From: Takakia lepidozioides
Taxonomy: Eukaryota > Plantae > Bryophyta
Direction: 5' to 3'
Length of the DNA stretch: 64,000 nucleotides
Assembly (NCBI GenBank): GCA_030704615.1
Contig: CM060733.1
Coordinates: forward strand, 75,764,001 to 75,828,000
This document shows positions 38,023-64,000 of the stretch, piece after piece (the first letter of the stretch is position 1; the number at the start of each line of letters is the position of its first letter). A program made the translations under genes and the position numbers. The notes under the pieces are model-generated. The model searched no databases. It was not told where the DNA came from and saw nothing but the letters and a program-made list of their open reading frames with translations.

Positions 38023-39639
38023 TAACACACCAATAGATTGCGGCTTTTACGTCTCTGTGTTATGACTGCAAATGCAGTCATGGAAGCCATTTACGACTTC
38101 CTGACTCTGCAGACGTAAAGCCCTAGTCAGTTGTGACATGGCAGATATGACTCTCCAGGCTGGCTGTGACGTGGCGCCATAGCATCTGTGGGGGTAGTCA
38201 TACACGCTGGCATTACAGAATGACTGAACGGATAGTGTAGTCCATGTCGGCCGCGGTGTAAGGCAGACACGTGCTAGCTACATAACATGCCACGTGTCAC
38301 ACTGCGACGCCATCCCTGACTGCCAGCTATGACAGCGGACAAGGGAACTAAACGACAGCACGTGTCGCGTCGTAGAAGAAACGCGTGGTGCGACATATCA
38401 ATGCCACGTGTCACTGTGGGGGACGGGGCTTCGCAGTCATATGTATGTCTTGGGGAAATTGGTATCAACACGTGGCAGCATCTGGGGACACCACGTGCCA
38501 GGATCGTGTGTGCCCACGTGCTGGACTTTCGGGAGCTGCGGTGGATTCTTGCCAGTCATACCTACGACTGGCGCAGTACGGTATATTCCATGATCACCCT
38601 TTCCATGAGGACGTTGTAGTCCCACGTGGTGCCACGTGCACAATCCTCTAAACCTCACGTGCTGCTTCGTAGACATACATTTGATTGGACGTTTTGCATA
38701 TGGAGTCATAAGACCAACTGCGCGGGGACCTTAGGGGGTCACGTGTCTCCAAGGGATGGAGGTGAGTGAAGGGTACCCTATCGTGCCAGAAGGCTATATG
38801 GCCATCCACATTGATGATGTCCGCATTCCCAATGCCCCTCTACCATATCACAACAAATCCATGAAGCCTCATCACACTGAGTTGGGAGACACTGTAGGTT
38901 ACATTACTGTGTGGAGTGACAAACTAGTGAAGACCTTGCAGACAAAGAGATGAGGCAGGTCGGCATGCATTGTGGATTTCATGGGGATTTCCACCTCTGC
39001 CTCATCCGGATTTGGCAACTACGGTAACTTATAGTAGTGACAGATTCTCTGAATTGACTGTCCAATTTTGATAGCAACCACATGTTGGATTTCCTCATGC
39101 ATGTTGTTGCAAACTTATGCCTCATTAATGAGCAATGTGGTGGTAGGTGGTATGTCCCCATTGCACACACTATGGTTGGTAATGTTGCTGCTGGGAGAAT
39201 GTGGTTGATAATGGTGATGCTGGATGGTGATGTTGCTGCTATTTGTGCTCTTTCAGAATTACATCTGTGCCACTTCTGTGCCTAAAGTCTTGCTGTATAC
39301 ATGATTGTGATGTTGTATGGCATATGCACGTGGCACCCTATTGGCTACCTCTGTGGCATATCCACGTGTCCGTCCAGAGTCATAACCATGAGTACCGAAC
39401 CCAATATGATACGTGTATGAGCATATTACATTCGGCCAGATCCGGCTGTTGATCGCGAAACAGTGTCTATGAGCTTGACATTTTCTCCCACCACGAACTG
39501 CCATCCCACCCCAAACATGGCAGATTGCATAAGAATTATGGAACACGGATCGTGCAAAGTATTGTGTCTACAAGGTCTACAATGAGCTAATAACAATTTG
39601 TCTATCCAGGTCGGGAAGGGGAGAATAGCAGATGCATAC

Positions 39640-42600
39640 ACTTACCCCATTCTGCGAATCAGGGATCAGTGGTGTCGGCTTCCTGAAAGGGTGAAGGTGT
39701 GCTGCCCTTTGACTTGGGGGGCCTCGTTCGTGGCCAAGCACCTACAACCAACCAACAAGCACCAAAAATGTATTTTGGCATACACTGGGAACTCAAATGA
39801 CAGTAACACAATAAGATGCACCATTCACTGTCAATGCCTGCAGTTCACACTGCGACAATAATTTGACAAACTCCATCACAAGGTTGATTACTGCCACAAC
39901 TTAAGCACAAATGAGGCTGGCAATGGCACAAGGGAGTCAGACAAAAATTCGACCACGGAGTGTACCACACTACAAAGTATGTTACCTGGCGAGGCTGAAT
40001 GGCTCGAGGGCTGATAGCTTGTTGCCCAAATGTGGGTTGCCCTTTGAGATATTCTGGAATGCTCGAAGCCTTAGCTGCCCCCTCCAAGAAGGGCCATAAG
40101 CTAGTTAGAAGAAAATTATCATTGTGCGCCTCTACAGAACGACTTCTCCAAGGCAGTGGAAAAATTGCGTTGTATGCTAGATTGTTCGACCCCTTGTGCG
40201 GTGTGTCGTCAACAAGAAGAGTCGTTTCAGGATTCCAGTCACGGTTGCCCCGCCACACTGTAGATAGGTTCTTCAAAAACCGTGGTTTCATGGACAGGCT
40301 CCCATCCATGTCAATGGACTGCTCACAATATCCCCCATCCCACTTGAATGCAAGGTCACCGTGCCCATGGAAAAGCCAGTCCACTGTGGGTAGGAAGTTA
40401 CGTGGTTGCATACAAGACCATGCTGCCACTTCAAAGTGTTCAAAACACTTGTCCAAAAAAGCTTTGCAACCAGGCCTTACAACGACCATCTTGCTACCAC
40501 ATAATTTGTGCTCAAGGCCATTTGGAACCACAAACGCATTACCGCTCCCGACATGGACGCACTCACACAACAAGCCATTAATATCTAGGATGAGCAAATG
40601 CTTGCCCTTCTCCACTGTTCTGTGCACGACATTCTCCTTCATGAATTGGAGGTTGGGAGTGGAAGTGACAACCGTGGGTTGCTGGGTAATATCTGCCAGC
40701 GGGGAAACAAGGTCAATGTCCAGGGTTCTCTCAGATGCCCCCACCGCGACAGCAGCAGGCCAGAGTTCTGCATGCGCCTCCACTACCGCACAGTGTGACA
40801 GAACTGCACGAGGACGCGTAAGTTCCTTGGTAGGGGTGTCCTCCCCTCCACCTAGGCCAACATGCTCCACCTGCACATCATCCTCGAATGCATCAACTGG
40901 AGTGACGTTACCTGGTGACATGCCAGGCAAGTCAAACCTGTCCTCCAGACGTCTTGAGGCTGAAGGGCCAGCGATGCACGAGCTGTTTGCTATGGATGAG
41001 CCCACTAAGGCAGGTGAGGAAATGCTGATCCCAAATTTCTCTGCCATGGCCTTCTGGTACGTCATCACATGCGATATTATAGCCTTCAAATCCATTATAT
41101 CTTTGTGTTGTGCACCCTGTGCTCTTTCCATATCCTCCACTTTGCGAGCAACTGCTGAATACCCAGAGGTCCCCTCCTGCCAGGTCCACGCAAGTCCATG
41201 AACAACATGAGAACATCATGCCGTTGGTAGGGAAAATGCCTAGAACAAAATAATCGACAAAAAATGGGAGAAAGAATGATCTGCTCGAATCTCACCATCC
41301 GCTCGCTGGTCAATGTTCTGCTTACTGAACCTTCTTGGATTTCATGCAACGATGGACTTCGTCCTGGCTCCTGTGCCTACATTGGAAATTGCCCAAGCAT
41401 GAGTGCAGGCTAGTTTCCTCACCATCAAGGCATGGTTGAAACAATCAAGTGCAAATTAGCTCTTAATAATGAGTTTCATTCACTTGGGGAATGGCTTAAT
41501 ACAAATTATTGTGCCTCCAGAACTCAGAAAGCAACAATTTCATGGAGCTTCACAACTCTGCCAGTACACATAATCTGACATCAGAGAATGAGAGCAGCTC
41601 TCAGGCAACGACATCAACACAATATGTCTAAGCAGAAACTGGTGAAAATCACGTCGTCACATAGACCTCGCACTCCCCGAATATAACTTTCAAACGATTC
41701 TACTTGCCTTTCTTGATGAACATGAGGGACAACTTACATGAAGTTGCACCACTATTCTGACCATGGCGAGACCCAATTGGAAGAAATACAGAAATGTAAC
41801 CAAGGCATAACAAAATTGCAAAACTGGGTCTCTATCTCCTTCAAGAAGTCTGGCAAACTGTATTACTGACCACTTGCTAGGACCAAGTAAGAAAGATTAC
41901 CATTGTACTTGACGATTGCAACCTTGCCCAATTTTACAGATGACTACTACGTAGCACTCACAAAATACTCCTTCCACAAAAAACAGTCCACAGTGATTCG
42001 CTATTGAAGTGACTCTTGGACACACCTCCACCCTTAAAGATGCGCTAGGTAGGGTCTCCCTGCAATAGAAAAGGCTAGTAGCACTCGGGAAACGAAGCGT
42101 AATTCAAGATACCTGCCTCCCCCCTTAAAGAAAAGCCTACAAGCACTTTCTGACAAGGTGAATGAACACTTTAGTTCACTCCACAGGCAGCACCCCTTCA
42201 AGAAAACCCTGATTGCACTCCACATAATTTGGAGAATTCCTGGCCCAAAGCTTGGTGGCACTTCGTACTTCCCTCGTAACATGGTGTAAAATGGGGGAAA
42301 TGGACACCCCATTATACTTTGTACTCATAAGACATTGTTTGCCGTACCCTTGTGGCCATTGACCCCGTGCCCAGTTTGAGCGGGAACAAAAGGAACAGAA
42401 CCTACCTCAGTCAGGGGTTGACGTTGGTAGTAAGACTTACCTTCATATAAAGAATTAATCCGGGTTTTCCAGATATCCTCTAGAAAACCCTTCACACAAG
42501 CATCAATCTGCTGGGTGTGATTTGCACAATTCCCTTGATTGTGAAGAGAGCGTCTCTTTGGTGAGAGAACCCCGGACAGTGTATCAGAAAATGAATACTG

Positions 42601-44793
42601 TCTTCAGATTGCCCACACAACGGACAATTGCACTCTCCCTTTCCTCTCTGCTTCTGTTTGCTGTTCAAAGGTAGGCTTCCTGCCCTGAGTTTAAATTTCA
42701 CTGTAGTGCCAAGAGTGGGTAGACCCTTGAGGTCATCCAAGATGTCCACCCCCATGTCACTGACTGGAAACAAGTTCAGGGAAGTTCTCTGCCTAACTTC
42801 ATTTTCATCACACAATCTCATGGCAACAGACATGGCTTCAGACACTACAGCCTCTAAGTCAGATTTATCCAGCAGGGTCAAGACTTGCGGATCCAGGTCC
42901 AGGGCCTTGAGAATCTTTTCTACTCTCTTCTGCCAGGACTTACCCTGTTTGACATTATAAACAACAATCAGCCAAGGCAAAGAGGGCAAAAAGATTGGTG
43001 TGTGAACTTACAAGCCGAGCCTCAACAGATGCCTTCCCACCACGTCCCGTTTTTTAAGGCTTCTTGATTGATGAATTTGCAACCTTCATGAGGGCACTTT
43101 TTGCGTTGAATCCTGCTGTCTGCCAATACGATACCAGCCTGTCCCAATGAGCTTCCTTCAGATGCGCAGGCCTCCCCTTGCCTGCCTTGTATAGTGCATG
43201 GATCTCGTGTCTTTGGGTTTTCAAGGCAATGCCAAGTGTCTTCCTCATGTGCTCATAGTCAAGACCACATGGCGTGTACGCAAATGTAGAGTTTAGAATC
43301 CTGTATATTTCTTCAAAGACAGATTCATCCTGCGCTGCAATATGCATTGACATGTCACACAAACGCCACATCTGGCCTTTGAGGGCTGCATGCCAAGTAT
43401 TGCGTGCTGGTTCAATGGGCTCTCCAGCTTTGTCAACCGGAAGCACTTGAGGGGGGAGTCCATCTTCCTCTCGCGCATCATGGTTTCGGATTGCCTCTGC
43501 CCTGGCACGCCTGTTCGCCCGCCTCAAAGCATTAGCTCGGTCCTTCTTGGTCATAGGGATGTCTTCCTTTTCCTCCTCAGGTGGTGGGGCAGCTGGGGGT
43601 TGCCATGGGGAATGGGGGGCGGGACGGTATCGCCCACCGTATGGCCCAAAAGGTTCGTATGGTGGACGTGTAGATGCCGGGTAAGCATGTGGGTCTGGGA
43701 GGTAAGGGGGAATAGGCGGAGGAGAATGGGCATATGGCTGCTATGGGTAACCACCTGGAGGGGGCTTGTATTGGATGTGCAGGTTGTAAGGGCCCGCAGC
43801 GCCATACTGATCGGGGGTGGGGTAGGCATGTGGGTAATGTGTGTACGGAGGGTACTATGGAGTAGGTCGTGGAGGTGGTCTTGCTGCGCCTGGGGACTTG
43901 TTTGTAGCAGCATTGACTTGTTTGAACAACCCCCGCCCCGATGGACTGCCCACCACAGCTACAGCGCCTTCGATGGAAGCTCGCCTCTTCCTGGCCTGCA
44001 CAGAATAAAAACCAATTCAAACATTAAAGTCAATCAAAGCATTCAACAGATATCATGGCAACTTCAAAAAAACTAACGTCGTGCACCTGCCATTTTAATG
44101 CTTTGATTGTACTCATCCTACTATGAGCAGGTCCTCATCCCCTCGGACTCATCAGGTGCCCCACACTTATGTTTACCCAACTTGAAAAGTGAGGGCATTG
44201 CCAAATCTACACGGCCAATTCCAAAGCCTACCTAACGGGGAGACCTCACAAACCATTGGCATGCTTGTATCAAAGCGTGCATACAAGAACTTGCATCAGT
44301 GGGTAGATGGACTCATTTGAATGGACATTGCATTTTAGTTGTAAACAGAAACATAACTGTGTATCAACCTCTTAGTAAGAGCCTTTGACTTTAACCCAAA
44401 CTGTGTACACGATGAAGATATAGCGAAGGGCTTGATTTCCTATCCCATTGTGGGGTTTCACTGCCTATATGCTAGGGCATCCCTTCCTTGCTACATGCAA
44501 ATTTTGAAGATGTGGCGTCATAGTGAGCAGGTGCTTACAGATGGTGATTTTGCCGGCGACGGGCGTTTCTGGGGAAGCGAGGGTGCAGGAGCTGGGTGGC
44601 GAAGGACATCTTCGCTGGAATCGCCAGTGTGCTCGCCCGCAGGGACACACAACAAATCTTCGTCCTCGTCTTCATACTGCCGTGCCTTGTCGGCCATTGT
44701 TTTTAGCCTTCCACTGCGTCTGGGTGGTCCCGTGGGTAGTGGAGGTCGACGGCAAGCACGCTTTGGTTTCGGAGCAACAAGCCTGCAAGCCAA
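39640..44793 (-). pseudogene. CACTA second gene (TnpA-like, spliced) containing a NIF/FCP1 HAD phosphatase-like domain
   Basis: TnpA-like exon 43054-43554 (WHAALKG..R, HWDRLVSYWQT). ORF 39845-41140 has LLILDINGLL, VVVRPGCKAFLDKCFEHFEVAAWS, FLKNLSTVW and TTLLVDDTPHKG..N...NAIFP. Confidence 0.75.
42510..43010 (-). mobile_element. 3' fragment of a non-LTR retrotransposon ORF2 (zf-RVT-like)
   Basis: KFKLRAGSLPLN...CPLCGQSEDSIHFLIHCP.F..QR. A related piece lies at ~52228-52420. Confidence 0.75.
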
Positions 44794-45199
44794 ACCCTAA
44801 CCAATCCCGCTCTCTTCATGGTGCGCCATGATAGTGTGGACCAGCATTCTATGTACTTAGCAATGCAATCCCAACACTGGGAATCTAGCAAAACTCGTAA
44901 ACCCAAAAGACAAGAACTAGGGCAATTCCAGGCTAAACCGTATACCTCTAACATTTTTAAAGAAATGCCCTAATGACAAGCCCCTGCAATGCTCTCCTGC
45001 GAGATAGCGGCCACAACAGTAGGGTGAGCCGCCTCTCAGTATACTCACAGTGGGTGCGAACCAAACAACTCCGCCTCAACCTCTTTGTTGCGAGCAATGC
45101 AGGTCTCCCTTAGCTTCTCATACGCAGTCAGGGGACCGCACGGGGAGGGCCTGACCATGGCAGTCTGACATCAGCTGCAAAGACCCTTGCACACCCCCT

Positions 45200-48100
45200 T
45201 GTGTAAGTACAATGTACACAACGAGAGCGGGGTTTTGGCTGAGAGCTCAACGACTCCATGTGCGCAGGAAAGATGAGAAACTGTGGCGACTAGAGGAGGC
45301 GCATGCCATTGCACAAGGGCACCGCAAATTATTGTGCAACTGCAGAACTTGCCATGGAGGGATCCCGCAGTTTCTACCGATGGCCAAAAAACACCTAACA
45401 AAGTATGGGAGGGACCCAAACCTTCGACAGTGTACAGTCCCGGTACGCCTTGCACGATGCACGCACTCTGACATGCTCGCAGCACGCCCGCGCATGTCCG
45501 CATTTTGGACAGTCGTGGAGTGACTGGAGTCCGAACTACGTGTCATTCTTCCGTTGGATGTATTGGAGTCATGGAGTCGTAGTGATGGAGTCATGTAGTT
45601 GGTAGTGCGTCAGAGTAGTCATGTCCATGACTTCATGACCGCGGATCATGGACATTTCAACTACGTGGTGTTCTTCCATTGGTTGTACTGGAGTCATGTA
45701 GTGAGGGTCATGACTACATGGTCGCTGTTGACTGCCATGTCGGAAGGCTGGCCGCATTTTGGGCTTTTGGTAGTTTGTTGCCATGTGTCATGCCTTCAAC
45801 GCACTGCCCACTTGGGCATATTTGTTGAGAGCCTTCACTTTGTCGGTATGTGAAGATAGCTGTCTGTATGTGGGGATGTCAATTTCTATCACAGAGGGTA
45901 TGTTTGTTTTGTTTTTCGATTCGAACTGTGTTCCTACTTTGCCGTATTATAGGAGAGTAGTTTTCATTTGTCTTTGTGTGTGAGCTCCACAAGCTGCTTC
46001 GAAATGAAGACTGTGGCCGACCAATTTCGTCTCCTGATTCGCAAGTGCGGGGGAGACTTGCAGCATTCACCTCTATTGAACTAGTGCAATTCCACGTATT
46101 GTGTTTGCTTTACATGACAATGTTTAAATGAAATTTCAGAGTCTGGGAGTTTTGAAAAAAGCCTGTTCATCGTATCCCAATTTCTGATTTTCATTTGCGT
46201 TCACAGGGCTACATTACATCTGACTCTGAAGTGGAGGCTGAATGTAGTGTAGAGAGTGTTGCAAACGACGTCAATTTGGAGGGACAAGACGGCAATGGGC
46301 TACGGGGCCAGATTGCCCGTGCTGTGCAAGATGCATTTGAAATATCAGATACCCTCCGGGAGAATCCCACACCTGCCCCAAATGCCCTTCCCTTGGACAA
46401 TGATGAGGTTGTTGAGAATGGCGCAAATCCCTCTGAAATGCCTGATGGGGAAAATATGGGCGGAGAAGAAGCAGGCGCGCCAAATGATCTTCACCATGAA
46501 AAACTCATGCGAGAGTCCCAAATCCCCTTATACGATGGGAGCGTTCACAACCGATTGACTGCCACATTGATGTTGCTCAATTCTTGCACCACTCACAGAT
46601 GTACCAACGCATTGTGGATGAGTTATTTTCATTGTTGAGGCTGGAGATTTTGCCCAAACAAAACACCTTGCCCAAATCGCAGTATGAGGCCAAAAATATG
46701 ATCGCCATGATGGGTCTAGGATACAAACAGATCCATGCCTGTGAGCGTGGATGTGTATTGTTTCGTGGAGACCTGGAAAAGGCTGCAAATTGCCCCAAGT
46801 GCCACAGTCCTCGATACATGGACGGCCGTGGGAAGGTGCCCAAGAAGGTGCTGCGATACTTTCCTCTCATACCTAGATTGAGACAGATGTTCCGAGTTAA
46901 GACGCTGGCAGAGCTCATGAAGTGGCACAACAATCATAGAAGTGCAGATGGCATGGTCCGACATGCTGCAGACAGTAAGGCTTGGTGCCATATTGACAAC
47001 ACATGGCCGGATTTTGCTTCAAATCCAAGAAATATGCGTCTTGGATTGGCACTGGATGGGGTCAATCCTTATGGCACAAAATGCGCGAGTTGGTCCACCT
47101 GGCCCATCATGGTGCTCAATTATAATCTACCTCCATGGTTGGTAACGAAGAATTTTTTTGTCATGTTAACACTCCTCATTCCTGGAAAGGAATCTGTGAC
47201 AAGTGAAAATGTGGATGTTTACCTGCAACCACTAGTGGAGGAGCTAACGACATTGTGGGTAGGAGTTGCAGCCGTGGATGTGGCAGCCATTGAAGGAGAG
47301 CGGGCTTTTACCATGCGTGCAGTCCTCATGTGGTCCATACATGACTTCCCCGCCTATGGCTTGTTATCAGGTCAGGTTCACCAAGGGTACTCTGCTTGTC
47401 CAACATGTGGACCTCAAGTCGATTCCAGATATTCCCCAGCTTGCAAGAAATTGATATTCCAGGGGCATCGACGGTATCTTCCCCACAATCATGCCTACAG
47501 AAGATCCAGACTTTTTAATGGGGCGCGAGACATGAGACCTGCTCCACATACAGTGACAGCCACCGAAATCAAGGAGCGTGCACGACATTACAAACAATGG
47601 ATTGATGATGGTGGGACTGTAGGCGCACAGAACGATTCCTCCAAGCTCCATGGCGTAAACGATTGTCCATTCTGTTTGACTTGCCTTACTGGGAGGTGCG
47701 ATTACCACACCTGTGTTTTGGGAACATAATAGTGCATTGGTTTTCATTGTGCATGATTGTTTGTTTACTGAACCTGTGCTATTAACATCATTCATGACTA
47801 CATTGCAATGTGCTTAATTTGTTAGACCACATGGTGCAGCATCTTATCATCCGCCACACTTTTGATACCATGCATTGCGAGAAGAACGTGACGGAGAACA
47901 TAATGAAGACTCTTTTCGGGGAAAAGGACACGATGAAAGTTCGCCGCGATCTGGAATTGCAGGGCATTCGAAAGCCTCTTTGGTTACGACTCCATCCCAC
48001 CAGAGCGGATACATTGGTAATGCCTGATGCGCCATATGTGCTCACAAAACCAGAGCAGCGGGTGTTCCTAGAGATTATCACGAATCTGAAAGTACCCACT

Positions 48101-49765
48101 GGCTATGCCTCTGCTTTCAAAAAACATGTGGTCAAACAAAAGTTGAGCCAATTGAAGTCACATGATTATCACGTGCTAATGCAACAGATCCTCCCACTTG
48201 CTCTACGTGGGTTGATGGCGCCTGGGGTTCGCAATGCCATACTAAGAGTGTCTTGTGTGTTTCACAAGCTTTGTGCAAAATTGATTGATCCCACCGAGCA
48301 TGAGGAATTGAAGAAGGAGGTGGCAGTGACTCTTTGTCTTCTGGAGAAAGAGTTCCCACCCTCATTTTTTGATGTTATGACACATTTACTTATCCACTTG
48401 GTGGATGAGCTGGATTTGTGTGGACCTGTAGCTTCTCGGTGGATGTACCCGGTGGAGAGAGCAATGAAGGATTTTAAAGGGTATGTGCGAAACTCGGCGA
48501 AGCCTGAGGGCAGTATGGCGGAGGGCTACGTGATTGACGATGCATTGGGATTTTGTACATAGTACTTGTCTTCTATTGATGCTACTAGGCGGAGAGTGTG
48601 GGATGCAGGAGAGGAGGAATCAGTGTCGGGCTGGGTGTTGGAAGGAGTTGGTCGACCACGCAGGTTGACCGTCGAATTGTTGCAGCTTGTCCATGACTAC
48701 GTCATTCACAACCATCCTAGTTTGAGCATTATGTTGGGGTAAGTGGCAAACGTGAGTGTATGTCACAGCTTCTGGTACCTGCTATGCATGGGTATGCTTT
48801 GTATAGGTGTGTGTGCAGTAGTTCTTCCATCGGCTGCAGGGGTTGCACTAGATAAATTGATGTGGTTGTGCGTGTGTTGGCAGGACCTATGAGGTGGAGA
48901 AATCTAGGTTGGAGACTGAAAATGCTGCTAACCAGAACAAGATCCGTGCTCTCCCTCACTTTGCAGAATGGCTGGTAAAAGCAGTCCGCCAGCATGTGTC
49001 AAGTGTTGCCAACCATGCTACTGATTCAGCCTGCAAGGAATTGTTGGACATGTCCAAACCCCCATCATTAATCGCAACATCATACAAGAGCATGTCGGCT
49101 TATGGAAACCACTTCAGGGTTACTTCAGATGGACTCAACAGCCCCTTTGTGACATATGACTCGGGGGTCTCTACTGTTTTCCAGCATGACTGTACTTGCA
49201 TTTCAGGTGAGCAGGTGGTGGAAAACGTACGGTATGTGGGTGTCATAAATGAGATTTTAGAATTGGATTATGGCTCCACACACACCACGGTGCTATTGTG
49301 TTCATGGGTGCGTGCACGACGTGTGGGCTCTCAGCCTGTGTCAATGAAGCAGGATGACTCTGGCTTCACATTGGTGAATTTCTCCCACTTGTTGCCTCCA
49401 CTTGAACAGCCTTTTGTGCTCCCATCACAGGTCGAGCAAGTTTTTTCTCTGAGTGTGTAAATGAACCGAGATGGGAACGTGGTGCTGGAAAAAAAAACCC
49501 CAGGTCACGCAGGGCTGTTTGTGATGTGAGCATTTGCAACGATGATATTGCAAGTGTATCAGGCCTCTTAGCCCCCAATCACATTGAAGAGACGAATGTT
49601 GCTGCTGACAGGGTGGGCCAGACCATCCAAGTGACACCTGAAGAGGTTGCTTCACTTTACAGAGACATGCAATCTGAGGAAGCACATCCATGTCCCACAG
49701 AGGACAGTTGCGATGGAGATTCAGAGTCCAGTGATGAGGAGTTGGTTGATGTGGATGTGTACTAG
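45200..49765 (+). pseudogene. CACTA TnpD/Tnp2 transposase (spliced, damaged)
   Basis: IHACERGCVLFRG, KVLRYFPLIPRL, RLGLALDGVNP, IHDFPAYG, FDTMHCEKNV, LKSHDYHVLMQQ, FFDVMTHLLIHL, RWMYPVER, PEGSMAEGY, PFVLPSQVEQVF. Stop at 48560 and frameshifts. Confidence 0.95.
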
Positions 49766-51442
49766 TACCTAGAATGAGGTACGACTTTCCCCCCAACTGC
49801 CTTTCTCTATCTCAAGTATATGAAGGGTGGTATGGGGCAAAATTCAATATGTGATCCCGGTTGATTCATGAATAATGTGGGATTCATAAGACTGGCACTA
49901 AGGGTTGCCCTTGGGGGTGTCCTTGTAGCAGGGTGTTGGAGGTGTCCAACTTACATGGCGTGTCTGTCTGGCAACGTGACATGACATTTATGTCACTATA
50001 GACTTTGGAACAGCGTGCAGATTTACACATCAGTTCTGCCTTGGGTACATTGTTGACAAAGTGCATGTGCCTCCTGTTTACATTACATAATTGCCCCAGT
50101 GATTTTGTGGGTCTTATATTGGGCAGGCTCGTGTTTATGGACCATTGAATACCAGTGGAGTGTTTTTAAGCTTGGTCCCTACTTATCATGTTTGCATTTT
50201 TCCCCAAAAGAATCCGGCAATCCGCATAGATGATGCTCTGGCTGGTTGAATGGGTTCTTTGCGTAGATGCATTTTATGGGCAGTTTCTCTCATGCCCCAG
50301 CTAACACCATCTGACTCACTTGTACAGTCCCCCATCTGTGAATGGCTCGAGCAGGGTGCAGTACATTCAGCACTACACTGCTGGTGCCCTGCAGGTGTTC
50401 CATGCCTTGCACCACATCATTATTCCCTGATGTCATCCTGCTGCTGTTCTAGCTTGGGGCAGGTCATTGGGGATATGTACATTAGAGAGAAGAACATGAG
50501 CTGTTATCTCAATTGTTTTATCATACAAGAAGCTTTCTTCATGGGCTCTCCCATTCTTAGAACACCCCCCCATGGCAAAGTGGGTGGATCGGAACAGCCC
50601 ATATTGCGAAGCTTCTGTTCCAGTACCACACGGCGTGGAGCTCCGGGACGGCCTGCTACAGCGCAGATTGCACAAGGCAATATGTTAGAGTGTCTTGGAT
50701 TTCATATTTTGTTGGTGTTCTTGGTCACTGGTCAAAGACTTTTGTTGAGCAATGTTTTGCATCACTGTCATGAGTGAAATCTATGATTTGCATGAGTTTG
50801 CCTATCCCCTGAATGCATCATTTGTTCGTCTGTCATTCCGCAGTATGAGGCTTGCTTTTGATGTTGTCCGCGATCAACAAACACTAAAATGCACGTCGCC
50901 ATTTGAACGTAATGTCACAAACAGATGCGGTTCCAGATCGCCTCTCTAGCATGTTGGCTTCACGTTCCATTCTTCTCCACAAAGCGCAAACGGCCTACTA
51001 ATCTGCTTCGTGTGCAACCCTTCCCTTCACTTGCATCCCCCGCACCACAATATCAAAACCACTTAACCAATCATATGTAGACACCTCATAAATTGTTCCA
51101 TGTCACAGACTCTCCATGTCATCACGACATGTGATGATTTGGCAGAATGCATTAGAGTGGCAGTCATGAAGTCATATGTCCGTCTAGCAATATGCACAGG
51201 TCATTCTAGTATGGGCATGACCCTGACTGGTAGTCATATCCGCCATGGCAATATTCCTGGTCAAAGGGTGTTTGACCTGTGTTGCGCAAAGTTCGGAGTC
51301 ATACAGTCGCATAAACGGCTTCGTTGTGATCTATGTTATGACTTCAAAAGGCATTTACGACTGCAAATGGCGTATCTGCCACAAATTTGTCGTGACTGCG
51401 CACCCATGGGAGTCATAAAAGCCGCAATCTGTTGTAGTGTAA

Positions 51443-52230
51443 CATAGATGAGGAGAAGCTCGTTGGTGGATCTATGGTGGTTTTGGAGTGATTTTGACAT
51501 GTTACTGTAGGTAGGGTTAGGGCGTCAGTGTCAGCTGCTAGCTGCAGCAAGGCTGAGGATGTATTCACGATTTGTACACAGGCAGGATAGCTGAAGGAGT
51601 GCAGGGATAGATTGTGGGTCCAGATTCATCCAAGAGGCACGGATTTCAAGCTCCAAATCGTATGTCTGTCTCTTGCTTAAGTGAAAGATGAAAGGTCTGG
51701 AAGCTGGAAACAGGTGCACACTCACATTATCCAAAGTGGATTCACGCCAAATGTTTTTCTACTCAACACCCTTGTCAACATGTATGTTAAGTGTGTGGAG
51801 CATCATGGATGCTCACCAAGTTTTCCACAGAGTGCCTCAACGATCTTTGATCACGTGGAATATAATGTTGGCAAGATTACCAAGGATGGGTGTGGTAGGA
51901 ATGCTTTGGAGACCTATGAGCAACTGCTGCGCGAAGGGTGAAGCCCAACCACATGACGTTTGTTTGTGTTTGCAATGCGTGTGCAAGGTTGGGAGCTCTA
52001 GAAAAGGGGAAAGAGGTCCATGGTGACATTGTCAAAGCTGGATTTGTACCAGATGTTATTCTGAACCTTGCCCTGGTGGACATGTATGCCAAATGTGGGT
52101 GCATTGAGGATGCCAAGGGAGTGTTCAACACTATGGCTGAACGAGATGTGGTGTCGGAAGCTCGACCACATCATGTTTGTGTGTGTTTGCAGTGCGTGTG
52201 CAAGCCTGGCAGCCCTGGAAAGCACATGCA
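51443..52230 (+). pseudogene. Continuation of the third PDF-PPR copy (PDF exon into PLS-PPR)
   Basis: gtccag|IHPRGTDFKLQI joins YVCLLLK..GKQVHTHIIQSGFTPNVFLLNTLVNMYVKC, followed by one PLS triplet. Confidence 0.85.
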
Positions 52231-54554
52231 GGTCATCCATGATATCCTCCCCCATGTCTCACAGACTGGAAACAAGTTCAGGGAAGTTTTCTGCTTAACT
52301 TCATTTTCATCAGACAATTTCATGGCAGCAGACATGGCTTTGGCCACTACAGCCTCTAAGTTAGATTTATCCAGCAGGGTCAAGACTGGCGGATCCAGAT
52401 TCAGATCCTTGAGAATTTTTGGGCATCCATGTGTGTGTGCAGGGGTTCAACTGCAGGATCATTGGTGGCGTATGCACTCTCAATCATTGGCATTGACCCT
52501 GTCAAGCATGGTCTCTATTATCCTCTCCCAAGTGCATGTTTGTGAAGTCCCCTGATTGATGACAGCTCATATAGCCTCTACTTGCTATATTTACTACTCA
52601 ACAAGGTTTTCATATGTGTAATGTTGAAGCAATAACTGAACCTGGACACGGACACCAAGTCCAGGAGCTGTGAGACATAAGCTAAAGTTGTCGCTGACAT
52701 GGGGGTTGGGCATGCAGGGCTTGGGTCAGGATCTCCAACTCCCACTGTCCACACCATTCAGCATTCTCACAAGCACTCCGTTGTGAGTCAACACAAAAGC
52801 AACAAAAACAAGCCAAATCCTTCCTCATCAGTTTGTTTGTATCACCACTAGGGACTGATCTCACCGAATGCACTTTTTGGGTTCCCTTTATAGGGTCACA
52901 ATCATGTCGTGAATGTCGGTTGATATCAGATTTCTTCACATTCCAAAAAACACGTTTTACATCCCGTCTTTGCCCAGTGTATGAAGTTTCAGGTCTTGAT
53001 GACAGTCGCTCTCTCAAGAAATTCACCACGTCCTCGGCATTTTGTAATTTAGGGCCTGACACATCCAACTGTGCTTGTCGCAGGATTCTTTTGACAACAG
53101 CACCTGCACCATCATGAGGGCCCTTGCCGTGCCCTGTACCAAAAAAGCTCCAAAGCAAGGCACAACCACCGGTGACATGAGGGTACCGACTCACAAAGTA
53201 CCATGGGACTTTGCTTTTAAATTGGGAAGCACAACTGTCGCTCCATATCCAATGCTCTCTTAGCCGAAGGAAAGTAGTGGATACATGTTTCCAATGCAAC
53301 AGCAAACAATGTTGTACGAAGTAATTGTCGTGGGTTTTGTCGTCCGAAATAAAAAAAATGGTACTCCATCAAGCTATCACTTCGAGGGTCATTACACTAC
53401 AACAGATCCCGGCTTTTACGTCTGCTATTTTCCAGTCGTATCAGCTTTTTATGACTGCATGACTGCCCAATCAGATAAACCCAGTCAGTTGTGACAAATG
53501 AGTCGTAAGCGCATAGAGTCTTATCTGCCAGTCGTGGAGCTCACTGTTGACGTGGCAACGGGGACGCCTAATCGTAGTTATTGTTAAGACCATAGTAAAT
53601 GACTGCAAATCCATGTCAGCTTCACGTGGAACGGAAAGGATATGCCACGTGTCACGTCAAAGGGTCTTCACGACTGGCATATACGATTCCATGGATTAAC
53701 CCCAGGACAACACATGGAGAATATCAGGAACAACACGTGGCATGACAGAGTGAGGAGAGGGGGTCTTCCAAGACTGGCATGTATGACTACACGTGGAGAA
53801 TATGGGACATGACACGTGGCATGGCAATATGGAGCGGGGGGGTCTTTCGTGACTGGCATATACGACTTCGGACGTTTAATCCCAGGTCCACACGTGGAGT
53901 AAAATTATGCAGGATGGGGGATGGTCGTTATGACTGGAACATATGACTTCCATGGCGCACTCTGGATATTGCACGTGGCACGAATATGGGCGAACACGAG
54001 GGGTGAAAGTGGCACGTGGCGGAGGCTCTGTGGATGGGAGGTAGTCGTGTACATGACCATAGTCATGGGCCTGACTCTAGCAACATTGAAACACGAAAGC
54101 AACATTGAAAGCACACGAAAACACCATTGAAACATGAAAGCGCATTTGAAATTGGAACATCGATTCAAATACAACATGACTTAATGTTCAGAGATCCGTT
54201 CCATAATCTAATCTGGTGCTGCTACAAAAATGCACAAAGCTGCAAAGTCTAAGTAGACTTCCAAATGCCTGAGCAGAAGATGCATACACTCGCTTGGCCG
54301 GACTTGGTCACCCACCTTCAACTGCCATCCAACCCAAAAACGGCAGAAGATACTTGAGCAAGCTTTCAGGCAATATAATAGCAACAACAACATTGACATA
54401 TGTGAAACAAACTAACATCGCGAAGAATGTCTAAGCACCATTACACAAACTCGATGTGTGCAAAATGGAAAATTGTAGGTAGGGAACCCTTGCCCCATTC
54501 TGGCAGTCAAGGACTGGAGGTTTGGGAGTTGTCAAGTGCTGACAGGTAGTGCGG

Positions 54555-55205
54555 TGGCTGCAAGCATCGCACTCCACGACACCACATCTCATTCAGCCAT
54601 AGTATTGAGCACTCCCTTTGCATCCTCGATGCACCCACATTTGGCATACATGTCCACCAGGTAGTGTTCATAATGATATCTCGTAATTGACAAGCATACA
54701 CATTTTTGCCTCGATTGTCCCACCATTGACTGGGGTCAAAAAAATATTCATTCCACAACTTGTCCTCATCTCTGTCACCTGTTTTTGGATACTTTCCTGT
54801 TGTCACATTGGCAGTATCATGTCAAAGTCACTCCAAACTACATTCACTCAACCAGCTAGTAACTTACAGAATTCAACATAGAAATATAGGGCCGATTCTG
54901 ATAAGAGGGAAAAACAGGGTCTCATGTGTTGAAGAAGGTGCCTTCATTAGCAGTGCCTGATTTTATCAATTGTGCCGCTGCTGCTGCGGCTTCCAGTTGA
55001 CCATCTACCTATGCAGGTTTCTTGTAGCTATCCTTCTACAGGGAATCATAGGTAATCTGGAGCTTGCAATCCGGCCCTCTTGGATGAATCTGCACCCATT
55101 TCTATCCCTGCGCCTTCAGCTATCCATGCCTAGGAGGGTATTGTTCAGAATCACATCTGGTACAATTCCAGCTTTGGTGATGCAACCATGCACCTCTTTA
55201 CACAC
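54555..55205 (-). pseudogene. PPR/PDF chimeric fragment inside the Pack-CACTA
   Basis: KEVHG.ITKAGIVPDVILN, then a full two-exon PDF unit, then VDMYAKCGCIEDAKG..DVVSWSAMLA. Confidence 0.85.
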
Positions 55206-55664
55206 ATGACAAGCTGGTGAGATTTGTAGAGTTCTACAGACCATGTTACAAGGCAAGCACTTGCATATCTGTACTCTTGAGTTATAAAACTGTGTGGTCA
55301 AGTTCTTATTACACTTCAGCGTATATGTCGTCCAGTAGAAGTGGTAGACCACCACCCGGCGTTAGGGTCCAGTGAAAGGAGACTTTAACACGTGTTTGTA
55401 AGGAAGTTTGTCCAGCCTCAAGCAATGTAGCTTTTTAGCGGTTGAGTTTCAGCTGGATAGCCTGAATAGAAGAGCTCCCCAGCCTTTTGTTCAGAAGGGG
55501 TTCATGGTCGTGTTCAAAAGGAGACAAGGTATGAGTATAGAAGGCTTCTATTCTGAGGTGGTCAGCATTTGTTAGCCTCTTGAAACTTCCCGCTCTGATG
55601 CAAGTTCTATTTTGCTGCACCTTGCAATATGTTTGTCTAGTCAAAAGAGACAAGCAAACCAAAC

Positions 55665-57056
55665 TTGGAATATACCGTCAAGTTGTCCACTTGCAGGAAG
55701 CTCAAATGTTTTGATATTGTCAGTGAGTAGCTTCTCCAATGGCACCAGCTCTAAGCCATAGTTATCATGCACCAGCTTGTAAACAAGTGCTATCAAAGTG
55801 AGATTCTTCAGACCCAACAAGTCCATCTTCAGCAAACCCAGGGCCTCAACTCCATCCATTGTGTACTGTGTGACCACCATGCCCTTCTCACCAAGGGCAT
55901 GCCGTAAGGGAACTACCTGCATGGGTCAATAATCCCGGGGAGAATGACCTTAGCGAGAGGGAAGGATGCAGGAACAATGACCAAGCCTGCTGGATGCACA
56001 CCAAACTCTTATGATTGTCCTCCAATGCCATGGCCATGTCTACCCACGCCTTCACGTGCCCCATCAGTATAGATTTGAGTCAGCAGCAAGACCTTCCCAA
56101 CAGACCTTGGATAATGTCAATAGCTTGAATTCATGAGGGGACACATACAGAATGACAATCTTGTATTGGCTCACATTTCAACGAGCCAAAGCTGGAATCA
56201 GAACACAAAAAAACTGTTTACTTATGTCAAAGGTTAAAACCCTACCCAGAATGAGGATCAGATCACAAGGAAAAAGAAGAGGAAATCACTGTGTTCCACC
56301 TGCTAAGCAAGATAACATGAAATCAATTAGGGATGAACCTCCAAGTTCTCATGATAGCGCTTGACAAACTTCTTGGAGGGAGAGTTGCATGTTATCATGT
56401 TTGCCAACTTCATAGGCTTCCCACGAATACTTGGCACCTGTTACCACCCATCTATATATTTTATCCCCGGGTGAAATCATATAAAAGCAGGTGAAGCACA
56501 ATAAACTGACACAAGATCAATTTAACCAAGGCCTCAATAAGGTGAAACATGCCAAAAAGAGATAAAGTGAAATTGGACCTCCAAACCATTAAATTAGAGA
56601 AACCAAACATCAAACACAGTTCCTGACCAGCTCGATCAACTCAGCACATTCACGGTAGGGCTTCCCCAGCATACGCCCTACATCTTTCAATATAGCTTTT
56701 GATGTCAATCGTGTCAATGTTGCGATTTGTGCTACCTGGTCCTCTCCATATTTGTTGGTAGCATATGTAATCACCTGTGGCATCCCTCGTCAGCTTTAGT
56801 TCATTTTACATGAGAAAATCCAAGGCATAAAGTTCTTTAATTACATCTTGTAACAACCTCTGTTTCTGTCAGCACAATTCATTCACTTTGTTGCGCCATC
56901 CTGTTCCCCTCCAGCTGTCAACCTTCTTCCCTCCTAACGGTACTTCCCACGTACATGCAGGTGTATTGGGGCTTGCAGAGTTCTGTGGCATTGTACCCAC
57001 CTTGTCACGCTGCTCAGGACAAAAGTCAGTGTCAATATCAGGCAACGACTGCCGCC
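55665..57056 (-). pseudogene. dnaE: Intron-containing fragment of DNA polymerase III alpha subunit (family C), cyanobacterial type
   Basis: Exons: ~57056-57001 SLPDIDTDFCPEQRDK; 56774-56628 VITYATNKYGEDQVAQIATLTRLTSKAILKDVGRML; 56437-56339 VPSIRGKPMKLANMI; 56055-55949 WVDMAMALE..FGVHPAGLVI; 55916-55665 VVTQYTMDGVEALGLLKMDLLGLKNLT..LDGIFQ. Introns are phase-0 GT-AG (one acceptor mutated). Confidence 0.92.
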
Positions 57057-57069
57057 GAAGTGGTCCCAC

Positions 57070-57513
57070 CCCTCGTCTGCCCCCTCCACCATGGCTTGGT
57101 GTTCACATGACGGAGATTTGCTTGCCTCCGTCCTACATATTGGGGACAATTTTGCGGTGAAAGCAACGGACGACAACGAGGAAAACGTGGAATTTTACAT
57201 TCTCTGTTGTTCTCGACCTCTTCATGAAGTGAAGAAGCGCTTCACTGATGCATGGCGCACTTCATTTGGCCAAGGTGACATGGCTGTGGCTGGTAAACGC
57301 TATCAGAAGTGGGGGGCAGACGACGACACCTATGTGCTGCGCAAAAATGCAGATGCGAGCTTTTGGCACCCTGAGCATGTGCGTGCCATACAGTTCCCGA
57401 TGCTACCTGCTGACCACAGGGTGTCAGGGAACAAGCCAGTGTATAAATTGCCACCATATGCAGAAGAGGGGATAATGCACGCGATTGCGGAGCTGGGCTC
57501 TACTGACAATTAG
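57070..57513 (+). pseudogene. Probable C-terminal region of a Sola-like transposase, inverted, inside the Pack-CACTA
   Basis: SHDGDLLASVLHIGDNFAVKA..NEENVEFYILCC..W..SF..GDMAVAG..YQKWG. Assignment is by resemblance only. Confidence 0.5.
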
Positions 57514-58744
57514 GCTTTCAAGATGTCAGTTGCAGCCCGTCATTTTGTAAGGTGAACATTGCTATGCCCATGCTCTACTTACTTTCCCATGGGATTTCCC
57601 TTTTGACCTATGAGCAAATGATGGGGGAAGGGGACATCATGTTACAAGTATTATGAAGTTGGACTGCATGTAAGAACTGCAATGGTATGGTAGACTAGTG
57701 GTACATGAGTTCCCATCCTACAGGGACTTCCTGGATTGGGATGCAGGAGTATCTCATTTTACAACAGGCCTTATAAGTATCTACCATTTTCCCCTATCTG
57801 GTCAAATGTGTTTGACCGCAGATCCTGACGGGGCGGAGGTACAAAGTGGCATATACGACTTCGGGTGGTCATAATTGGCAACCAGGACTGCCCCCTTGCA
57901 TTTTGCAGACATATGCTACGACTGGGCAAACGTGGTAGTCGTTAAAGCTGGGATCTATTGTAGTGTTAGGATCAAGCTCAGGGTTTCGACGCCAAGTTAT
58001 TAAAACCATGATGGTAATCTGGTAGGAATGCCAGTGCATTGATTGCACTTCATTCTGGATCTCAAAAGTATAGTTTTCTGCAAAATCAACCACTGAAACC
58101 AGAATATCAGATGGAAAATGCATCAAGCATTGTCAAAATTGCTTGTCCTCCCACCTTGCCACGAAATTGTGGCGAATGAATTCTTGCAGTTTAGGCTTCA
58201 AATATGATACGAGCTCGTGAGGTGGAGAGCGTTTGTGGACGAGAGATAGTCTTTTTTTCTCCTCTCCCTCCTTTGTCAATACTATTTGTTTCGCAAAGTG
58301 CTTCTAATCTACCATGTGCTCCGACGTGACATCCTCATCCTCCTCATAAGGACAAAGAGCTAGATTGTCAACACCATAGTTTGCGCACTCTCCATACATG
58401 CACTCGATTTTGTGCCAATCACTATACTGGTTTTTGGGGCATACCACTGACTCCCACGTGGGACACCCTGTCAAAGGTGTTTACAGCAGCTTGGCAACCA
58501 AGCTGATCACCTGATTGACACACGGATTCACATTCACATGGGCAAGAAGAGTGGATGCCCGATTTTGCTCTCATGTTGTTGAAGCCCAATCGGAGCTCCT
58601 CCCTTTCCACGTAGTAAATACAACAACAGACATTCCTCTCTGTCATCCTCTTCACAAAGAACGGTTTAAGAGAATCGAACTTGCGGCTCCCAATTATGAT
58701 ATTGGGGTGGGCTCTTTGAAATCGTAGAAAGAAGTCCATCTACA

Positions 58745-61849: not shown

Positions 61850-64000
61850 ATGAGCTGGAACTTGGTCACTTGGAACATTAGGGGCATAGGTTCCGAGGCT
61901 TCGGTGCCCAAGAGAAGAAGAATTAAAAGTTGGGTTGCTTCGTCGCTCTCCTTGCATCCCATAGTTTTTTTGCAAGAACATAAACTAGACGCTAGGAAAA
62001 GTGCTTTGCTTGGTCACTCTATTTGGCCTGCTTCTTCTTCCTGGTGGAATCCTACTGTTGTAGACACCAGAGGGGGTACGGCTATATAATTTGGTTACGG
62101 ATAGAATTGCTTTATGGTCCATGCTTCATTCTAATATCCTCAATAACCCGCAGGTCTCCAACTGGGTTTTAGCTGGTGACTTCAATATGGTCGACAGTTC
62201 TCTTGATAGGCTCGGCTCTGCTGCTCAGTCCCTGTCCTTAGATGAGCAATCAGCTTGGGACAATCTTTGCTTCGCAGTTTGGTTCTCGGACACCTTCCAG
62301 TCCCAACATTCTTCTCTTAGATTCACCTGGACCAACAATAGAGGCCCTCCTTACGTGCGTACATGGCTAGGTTAGATAGGTTTTATTGCTTCCGCTGGCA
62401 GCCACTTGGGCCAGCCCGGTCCCCCTTCCCCCTATCTTTCCGGACTTTGATCATGCGATGGTCTCTTTGGTCTTACATCCTCCTGGTCTTCATTGTAGAG
62501 GTAGAAGTTATTTTAAGATGAATCCTCTTCTTCTCAGATCCCCTGATCTCATCCGTAAGCTTGCCACGATTTGGAAGGAGTCTGCCAATGATTTTGCCTC
62601 TCCAATGCTTAGATTCCTTCATAAATTGGCTGTTGCTAGGAAACTGGCTCAATCCTTGTCCAAGTCTATGGCCCTTGAAAGATCTAGGAAAGAAAAGGCT
62701 CTATTGAAATGCATCTCTCACTGCTAATGGCTCATTGAGTCAAATGTTGTGGGCCCCATCACCTTCCAATCCTAGGCGAGAAGAAACCTGGTAGAGCTTC
62801 GTGCTTGCAAGGAAATTAATCTTAAGAGAAAAGCCGGTGTGAATTGGTCCTTGCAAGGTGAAAAAATGACCGCTTATTTTTTCCAAAAAACCAAGCAACG
62901 TCAGGCTGCTACCTCCATCTGTTCTCTTAGGGATGGGATGAACTCCCTTCAGACTTGCCCTAAGAAAATGGTTGCCACTGCGGCGGATTATTTGAAGACC
63001 CTCTTTTCACCTCCGTCCGTCTCTGATGTTTCCCTTTCCTACAGAAGCCAGATGCTCAGTATTGTGCCCTGCATTCTCTCCGCGGATGACCAGAATTCTT
63101 TGAACGCCCCCTTTTCAGTGACTTAGTTATTGGAGGCCACTGAAGCTCTAGCTGCGCTTAAATCACCGGGGCTTGATGGTCTTCCTGTAGAATTCTTTAA
63201 ATGCTTATGGTCGGATGTGGGGGAGGATTTCTTGCTCATGGCAAATGACATTCTAGGTAAAGGCATCATGCCTTCTCAGTTATTTCAAGGTGTTATCACT
63301 CTCATTTTCAAAAAAAATGATAGGGATCTTGAATCTTTAATTACAGGCCAATACTCTTGTAAACTCTACTTATAAAATTATTGCTAAAGTCTGGCCTTAC
63401 AGTTGTAGCCCTTCCTCTTCAAGCTAGTGCGTCCGGAACAGACTGGGTTTATGAAAAACCGTATGATCCTCAATAATATTCTCTTGTCTATCGAGGCCCT
63501 TCATGATCTGGCCCACGAGTCCAACCAGCCTTTGGCCTTGCTTATGCTAGACTTTGAAAAAGCTTTCGATAATGTTGATTGGGCTTTTCTTTTGGGTGCT
63601 CTGGAAAAGGTGGGTATCTTGGGGAGTTTCCTCTCTTGGATCAAAATCCTTCTCTATTTAGCCTCCAGTAAGGTAGTGGTAAACGGGGTCCTCTCTTCTT
63701 CCTTTCCCCTTAACGAATCTGTTCGCCAAGGGTGTCCACTTGCTCTCTTTCTTTTTCATATTGCTGTAGATACTCTGGGCACCTTTTGTCTTCCAACCAT
63801 GCCATCCAAGGCCTGAGAATCCCGAGATCTCTGCCTTCCCCTTAGAGCATCAAGGTGTTCGTGTATGCTGACGATATTGTGAGGTTAATCGATAACTCAT
63901 CTGCTTCCAATGTTACTACCTCTCTACAGGCTCTGGACTCGTTTTGTCATGCCTTTGGGCTCAAGGTGAATTGGTCTAAATTTGTTGGTATTTTCTAGTC
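61850..64000 (+). mobile_element. LINE (L1-like) ORF2 pseudogene: APE endonuclease plus RT, runs off the window
   Basis: LVTWNIRG, FLQEHK, LAGDFN, RLDRF, DHAMV; KSPGLDGLPVEFFK, QTGFMKNR, LDFEKAFDNVDW, VRQGCPLA, YADD. Many stops. Confidence 0.95.

Follow-up and report, generated by a model that had tools for sequence, protein, structure and literature searches.

In land plants, the replication of plastid DNA is ascribed to the family A POP enzymes (Pol IA/IB). A nuclear, plastid-targeted Pol III alpha (DnaE) has been described in red algae and in green algae outside the Chlorophyta (Antoine et al., bioRxiv 10.64898/2026.05.23.727376). Together with the genes of cryptophyte nucleomorphs, these genes form one clade inside the Cyanobacteria in a tree of 567 sequences (bioRxiv 10.64898/2026.05.23.727376), and it is this published tree that places the origin of the clade in cyanobacteria, by way of primary endosymbiosis. 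In the text of the preprint, the green holders of the gene are termed only ‘green algae’ and land plants go unmentioned (bioRxiv 10.64898/2026.05.23.727376). A literature search for Pol III alpha in bryophytes, lycophytes or ferns gave no match. The members of this Archaeplastida family considered here are Spirogloea muscicola SM000033S12379, Chara braunii CBR_g30249 and the genes of Mesotaenium, Mesostigma and Closterium. The initial annotation of the locus presented below had entertained the thought that the gene family might be undescribed; this has to be given up, as the family is already published (bioRxiv 10.64898/2026.05.23.727376) and full-length, intron-bearing genes are present in streptophyte algae.

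The second described system close to the locus is that of the Pack-CACTA and other Pack-TYPE transposons, in which the capture of host genes is thought to proceed by repair synthesis that fills a transposon with foreign DNA (PMC6379663). The DNA analysed here, called the window throughout, is a stretch of 64 kb from the genome of the land plant Takakia lepidozioides, and all coordinates refer to it. What is new is that a dnaE fragment in the window is the cargo of a transposon and that the positions of its introns agree with those of Closterium.

Exons and Lesions of the dnaE Copy

The locus had initially been read as five collinear pieces on the minus strand with motifs of DnaE, and every one of these motifs was found in its place. 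The five-exon account is nevertheless incomplete, since a tblastn search of the window with a protein of Spirogloea muscicola (P0001) revealed a sixth exon on the plus strand. Homology searches, alignments and the tree were done one exon at a time. In the order of the gene, the pieces are as follows.

52443-52510, plus strand: exon 0, 68 nt, directly preceding exon A in the gene and located outside the small transposon
57060-57001, minus strand: exon A', with the PDIDTDF motif and two catalytic Asp, truncated on its 5' side
56774-56628, minus strand: exon B, 49 codons, matching PF07733 with E = 1.2e-11
56437-56339, minus strand: exon C, 33 codons, flanked by phase-0 introns with GT..AG borders that are 190 nt and 289 nt long
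56049-55949, minus strand: exon D, 101 nt, that is 34 codons minus one base
55917-55948, minus strand: D/E remnant, 32 nt, GT..AG, at the position of the D/E intron
55916-55665, minus strand: exon E, 84 codons, with the end of the palm (third catalytic Asp, KMD motif) and the start of the finger

The gaps between exons A'-E measure 226, 190, 289 and 32 nt; all of them start with GT, end with AG and are in phase 0, and exon E likewise terminates at GIFQ, followed by GT. The earlier description of phase-0 introns is thus borne out by the borders and phase of all four gaps, but it does not extend to splicing of the D/E gap, which at 32 nt is too short for a working intron.

On the 1,612-aa Spirogloea protein, the pieces correspond to residues 509-762 (tblastn), with exons A'-E at 543-762 and exon 0 at 509-535. 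About 240 of the approximately 1,600 codons are retained, or about one sixth of the gene, and the same query detected no further DnaE-like sequence in the 64-kb window beyond exons 0 and A'-E. The PHP domain, the transit peptide, most of the fingers and the HhH and OB domains are absent from the window, and no dnaE sequence follows exon E. A complete PHP-palm-thumb-fingers-HhH-OB architecture in one ORF was not found, and within the 64-kb window there is neither an intact parent gene nor a dnaN/dnaX partner.

The view of the locus as a damaged fragment, taken in the initial annotation, was upheld: both ends of the gene are missing from the copy, a -1 frameshift disrupts exon D, and only the 32-nt remnant is left of the D/E intron. 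Exon A lacks approximately its first 10 codons, the similarity breaking off about 10 codons past the expected exon start. The frameshift in exon D lies at 56004/56003, and the two tblastn HSPs of this exon are in different frames. No in-frame stops occur in the seven translated pieces. At the 68 columns that are invariant across seven streptophyte and 16 cyanobacterial sequences, the window has eight mismatches, and live algal orthologues have 0-12 in the same leave-one-out count. The identity of the window pieces to Spirogloea, combined by hand from the values of the single exons, is about 64%, and the algal orthologues are 50-71% identical among themselves. This pattern of conservation looks like that of a source gene under selection when it was copied, with little drift of the copy since. 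The copy itself, as read from its lesions, is dead and unable to make a polymerase.

Family Identity and Nearest Relatives

Three of the pieces match the DNA_pol3_alpha profile (PF07733) collinearly and cover positions 97-117, 115-166 and 226-260 of its 260; the best of these matches reaches 45 bits (E = 1.2e-11) against a cut-off of 23.9. Positions 1-47 of the finger profile, PF17657, come next. Exon E aligns with residues 591-670 of the Thermus aquaticus Pol III alpha (2hpi; E = 9e-14), and in this alignment the Asp of the KMD motif falls on Taq D618. The catalytic carboxylates of the Taq enzyme are D463, D465 and D618. All three catalytic Asp are encoded in the window, two in the PDIDTDF motif of exon A' and one in the KMD motif of exon E. 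On these matches, the pieces are assigned to DnaE/Pol III alpha, of which they cover the palm domain and the beginning of the finger domain.

A search with exon E against 1.84 billion cluster representatives had its best match in Spirogloea muscicola P0001 (about 63-64% over residues 678-761, E = 9e-24), followed by Closterium, Mesostigma and then mixed bacteria. Against the same Spirogloea protein, exon A' is identical at 18 of the 19 residues of its tblastn HSP (0.89 on aligned columns) and exon 0 is 85% identical over residues 509-535. A word search for homologues was made with residues 480-900 of the Spirogloea protein; its full-length matches were only algal and cyanobacterial, and land-plant proteins were not among them. 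The full-length eukaryotic homologues comprise three sequences from Spirogloea and one each from Chara, Mesotaenium, Mesostigma, Closterium and a red alga. The identity to the query amounts to 73% for Chara braunii, 68% for Mesotaenium and 65% for Mesostigma, with cyanobacteria coming next at 63-66%. A 271-aa slice used as query returned partial proteins of bacteria only and no land-plant protein. A search for short products with exon E had a single match, of 94 aa, from a bacterial contig with a frameshifted dnaE, and in metagenomes exon E found only bacterial loci that were at most 54% identical.

Two small streptophyte-specific insertions are common to the window and the algal genes in the alignment, and the window is devoid of an insertion found in some of the aligned cyanobacterial sequences. 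In a maximum-likelihood tree calculated from exon E (84 residues, 55 rows), the window groups within the streptophyte clade with support of 95/81. Its placement near the Zygnematophyceae inside this clade is weakly supported, and the streptophyte clade itself stands beside cyanobacteria weakly (83/77) in this single-exon tree. Taken together, the matches, insertions and tree indicate that the nearest relatives of the pieces are the nuclear DnaE of streptophyte algae and not those of bacteria. The likeness to cyanobacterial DnaE that had been remarked on from the motifs is therefore right in part: the clade as a whole falls within the Cyanobacteria in the published tree, but the closest sequences are those of streptophyte algae.

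Intron Positions Compared with Closterium

The gene of Closterium sp. NIES-54 was placed on its own protein, and the resulting intron map was compared with the window.

Intron before exon 0: agrees with Closterium in codon and phase; phase 2, in an Arg codon
Intron after exon 0: agrees with Closterium in codon and phase; phase 1, within a Gly codon; exon 0 measures 68 nt in either gene
Intron A/B: same as in Closterium; phase 0, after Lys; the donor GTGGGT is common to both
Intron B/C: same as in Closterium; phase 0, between Leu and Val
Intron C/D: approximately two codons or less from the Closterium position, in an indel-rich region
Intron D/E: a few codons or less from the Closterium intron, whose splice point is ambiguous as a short motif is duplicated there

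Both boundaries of exon B consequently agree with Closterium in codon and phase. The initial claim that the fragment had been copied at the DNA level from an intron-bearing nuclear dnaE is substantiated by these spliceosomal introns at Closterium positions and phases. Intron positions held in common with a zygnematophyte favour vertical nuclear descent and disfavour a recent bacterial transfer or contamination.

In the Chara braunii gene, there are no introns in the region corresponding to the window pieces. This gene (BFEA01000333.1) has only two introns altogether, residues 24-1497 being encoded by one exon, whereas the Closterium gene is intron-rich; the density of introns in dnaE hence varies widely among streptophyte algae. 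A further observation concerns the protein of Closterium sp. NIES-64 (P0224), which at residues ~837-1005 reads through a tandem repeat of ~32 residues at the position of the D/E intron. The gene model seems to have retained an intron here; the NIES-54 protein (P0004) is spliced at this point.

CACTA Elements and Their Cargo

Exons A'-E lie within a small transposon, and a larger one of the same family is present in the window. The features concerned are listed below.

53395-57965, plus strand: non-autonomous CACTA transposon, 4,571 bp; its cargo consists of exons A'-E together with the relic of a PPR gene and an ORF of 140 aa
54431-55365, minus strand: relic of a PPR gene, the second cargo, 84-89% identical to PPR arrays at 7.8-11.2 kb
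38026-51439, plus strand: autonomous CACTA transposon, 13.4 kb, with a TAA target duplication on both sides and the same terminal-repeat family as the small element
52230-52420, plus strand: CACTA-internal stretch, 191 nt, 89% identical to 42730-42918 of the autonomous element

The search for CACTA...TAGTG pairs yielded a single pair, in which CACTACAACAGATCCC begins at 53395 and its reverse complement (15/16 bases) ends at 57965. The ends of the small element are similar over ~26 nt, and the element is flanked by a target duplication of TTA at 53392-53394 and 57966-57968. The pattern of the terminal repeats occurs four times in the window, where 0.01 occurrences would be expected. When the small element and one TTA are removed, an interrupted ORF on the minus strand continues across the empty site. 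This split ORF (57966-58739 and 52682-53394, minus strand) is transposon-like, has no Pfam match and carries one later frameshift.

The dnaE exons A'-E are antisense to the small element, in which there is no transposase: the sole ORF of at least 110 aa, 57091-57513, is without a Pfam match. It is an intact plus-strand ORF of 140 aa, head-to-head with the truncated exon A. In the ESM Atlas it shows likeness only to hypothetical proteins of Basidiomycota and Mollusca (score 0.90), and it probably represents the tail of a transposon protein. A PPR relic at 51443-52221 is, like the second cargo, 84-89% identical to the arrays at 7.8-11.2 kb, and the PPR relics of the window are of the PLS type.

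The autonomous element encodes tnp2 (PF02992, E = 8e-72) and DUF4218 at 46.5-48.6 kb, and a match to DUF4216 at 48.9-49.5 kb remains below the Pfam cut-off (28.1 versus 30.6 bits). The CACTA transposase of the window is of the streptophyte type. With its ends, target duplication, lack of transposase, cargo of host genes and an autonomous partner, the small element has what we recognise, from its sequence, as the anatomy of a Pack-CACTA. At 63427-63816 on the plus strand, a reverse-transcriptase fragment (PF00078, E = 5e-15) was also noted, which is probably the relic of a retroelement.

Exon 0 starts 22 nt past the CACTA-internal stretch 52230-52420, outside any bounded element. The interval 52230-52510 is thus a second, relic junction between CACTA and dnaE, 0.9 kb from the small element. 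One possibility to account for the closeness and opposite orientation of exon 0 and exons A'-E is local transposition from a donor element that later decayed. A simple inversion was also considered for the strand of exon 0 and rejected, as neither the matched ends nor the target duplication nor the continuity of the ORF at the empty site would survive it. The position of exon 0 outside the duplication-flanked element and in the opposite orientation with respect to the CACTA sequence means that capture and rearrangement were not one simple event.

Sequencing Reads

The stretch is present in seven runs from four independent studies. The summed depth of contigs over the dnaE fragment resembles that of the low-copy flanks, while over the PPR and transposon parts it is higher by a factor of thousands. 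Reads by the thousands on the PPR relics indicate a very large PPR family in the genome. The contigs of two runs that are possibly RNA pass through the introns unspliced; no run is recorded as RNA. Joints between opposite strands in the read contigs were considered as signs of rearrangement and discarded, as they are cross-matches between PPR repeats.

Origin of the Copy

The locus is in all probability a dead, DNA-level copy of approximately one sixth of a nuclear dnaE, covering the palm domain, that was captured as the cargo of a Pack-CACTA. The parent gene would have descended vertically from the cyanobacterium-derived, plastid-targeted dnaE of the Archaeplastida and would have been under purifying selection at the time of capture. 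A CACTA element may then have taken up a genomic stretch of this intron-bearing dnaE in the lineage of T. lepidozioides, comprising the tail of an intron, six exons and the beginning of the intron that follows, and rearranged derivatives could later have been moved by the transposase of the CACTA family. Carriage as CACTA cargo explains why the copy is fragmentary.

A segmental duplication that left a decaying remnant, surrounded by CACTA sequence by chance (for instance, a dnaE piece inserted by repair synthesis), is an unlikely alternative origin of the fragment. It would accommodate exon 0 outside the small element, the low-copy read depth and the mixed content of the element, where PPR and dnaE sequence occur together with the tail end of a transposon protein. 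The relic of exon 0, however, also adjoins CACTA-internal sequence. Moreover, if Pack-type capture is itself the filling of a transposon by repair synthesis, this explanation largely merges with that of captured cargo.

It is much less probable that the exons belong to a live, expressed dnaE, the remaining exons of which escaped detection or are situated outside the window. The canonical GT..AG boundaries, the lack of in-frame stops and the retention of the three catalytic Asp are what such a gene would have. Nevertheless, only residues 509-762 of ~1,600 are found in 64 kb and the pieces sit between transposon ends; exon A is truncated, with exon 0 on the other strand and 4.5 kb off, exon D is shifted by -1 and followed by an intron of 32 nt, and the possibly-RNA contigs are unspliced.

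Recent bacterial or cyanobacterial DNA, whether from horizontal transfer or as an assembly contaminant, is the least credible source. In its favour, DnaE is otherwise a family of bacteria, and its cyanobacterial members share 37-75% identity with the exons. Against it, the introns agree with those of Closterium in codon and phase, the best matches are streptophyte algae with the window inside their clade, plant transposons and PPR relics surround the fragment, and four independent sequencing studies contain the stretch.

With capture by a Pack-CACTA as the favoured origin, the locus bears on the history of the gene. Ancestral intron positions and conservation like that of live genes indicate that dnaE was carried under selection well into the land-plant lineage leading to Takakia. 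Such persistence narrows the time of its loss, or questions the loss itself. As matches to dnaE in genomes of this kind can be Pack-CACTA cargo and not genes, counts of loci say little about function. We tentatively raise the idea, which we hold to be somewhat less probable than its opposite, that Takakia keeps an intact, expressed and plastid-targeted dnaE elsewhere, against which the antisense fragments borne by CACTA elements could yield small RNAs. If an intact dnaE is indeed kept elsewhere, an embryophyte would have a bacterial-type replicase alongside the family A POP enzymes.

Comparison with Known Systems

With cyanobacterial DnaE (e.g., Chroococcidiopsis P0163), the window shares the palm motifs and the catalytic residues. 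Unlike it, the window and the algal genes have the two small insertions and spliceosomal introns, and they do not have the insertion of some cyanobacteria. In the algae, all domains of DnaE are united in one chain of 1,500-1,900 aa, whereas cyanobacteria include the intein-split form of DnaE-N and DnaE-C. The intein split site of cyanobacterial DnaE lies downstream of the part kept in the window.

The likeness to the Archaeplastida Pol III alpha is closer, as the window belongs to the same family and its streptophyte subclade, with the lineage-specific indels and the intron positions of Closterium. It departs from the algal genes in holding ~240 of ~1,600 codons, in being frameshifted, truncated and borne by a transposon, and in its land-plant host.

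From the known Pack-CACTA and Pack-TYPE elements (PMC6379663, PMC8903248), the locus differs in that the host is not an angiosperm and one captured exon is found outside the element. In the remaining features it resembles them: it has CACTA ends, a 3-bp duplication and no transposase, pieces of several host genes, introns included, make up its cargo, and an autonomous member of its family is located nearby.
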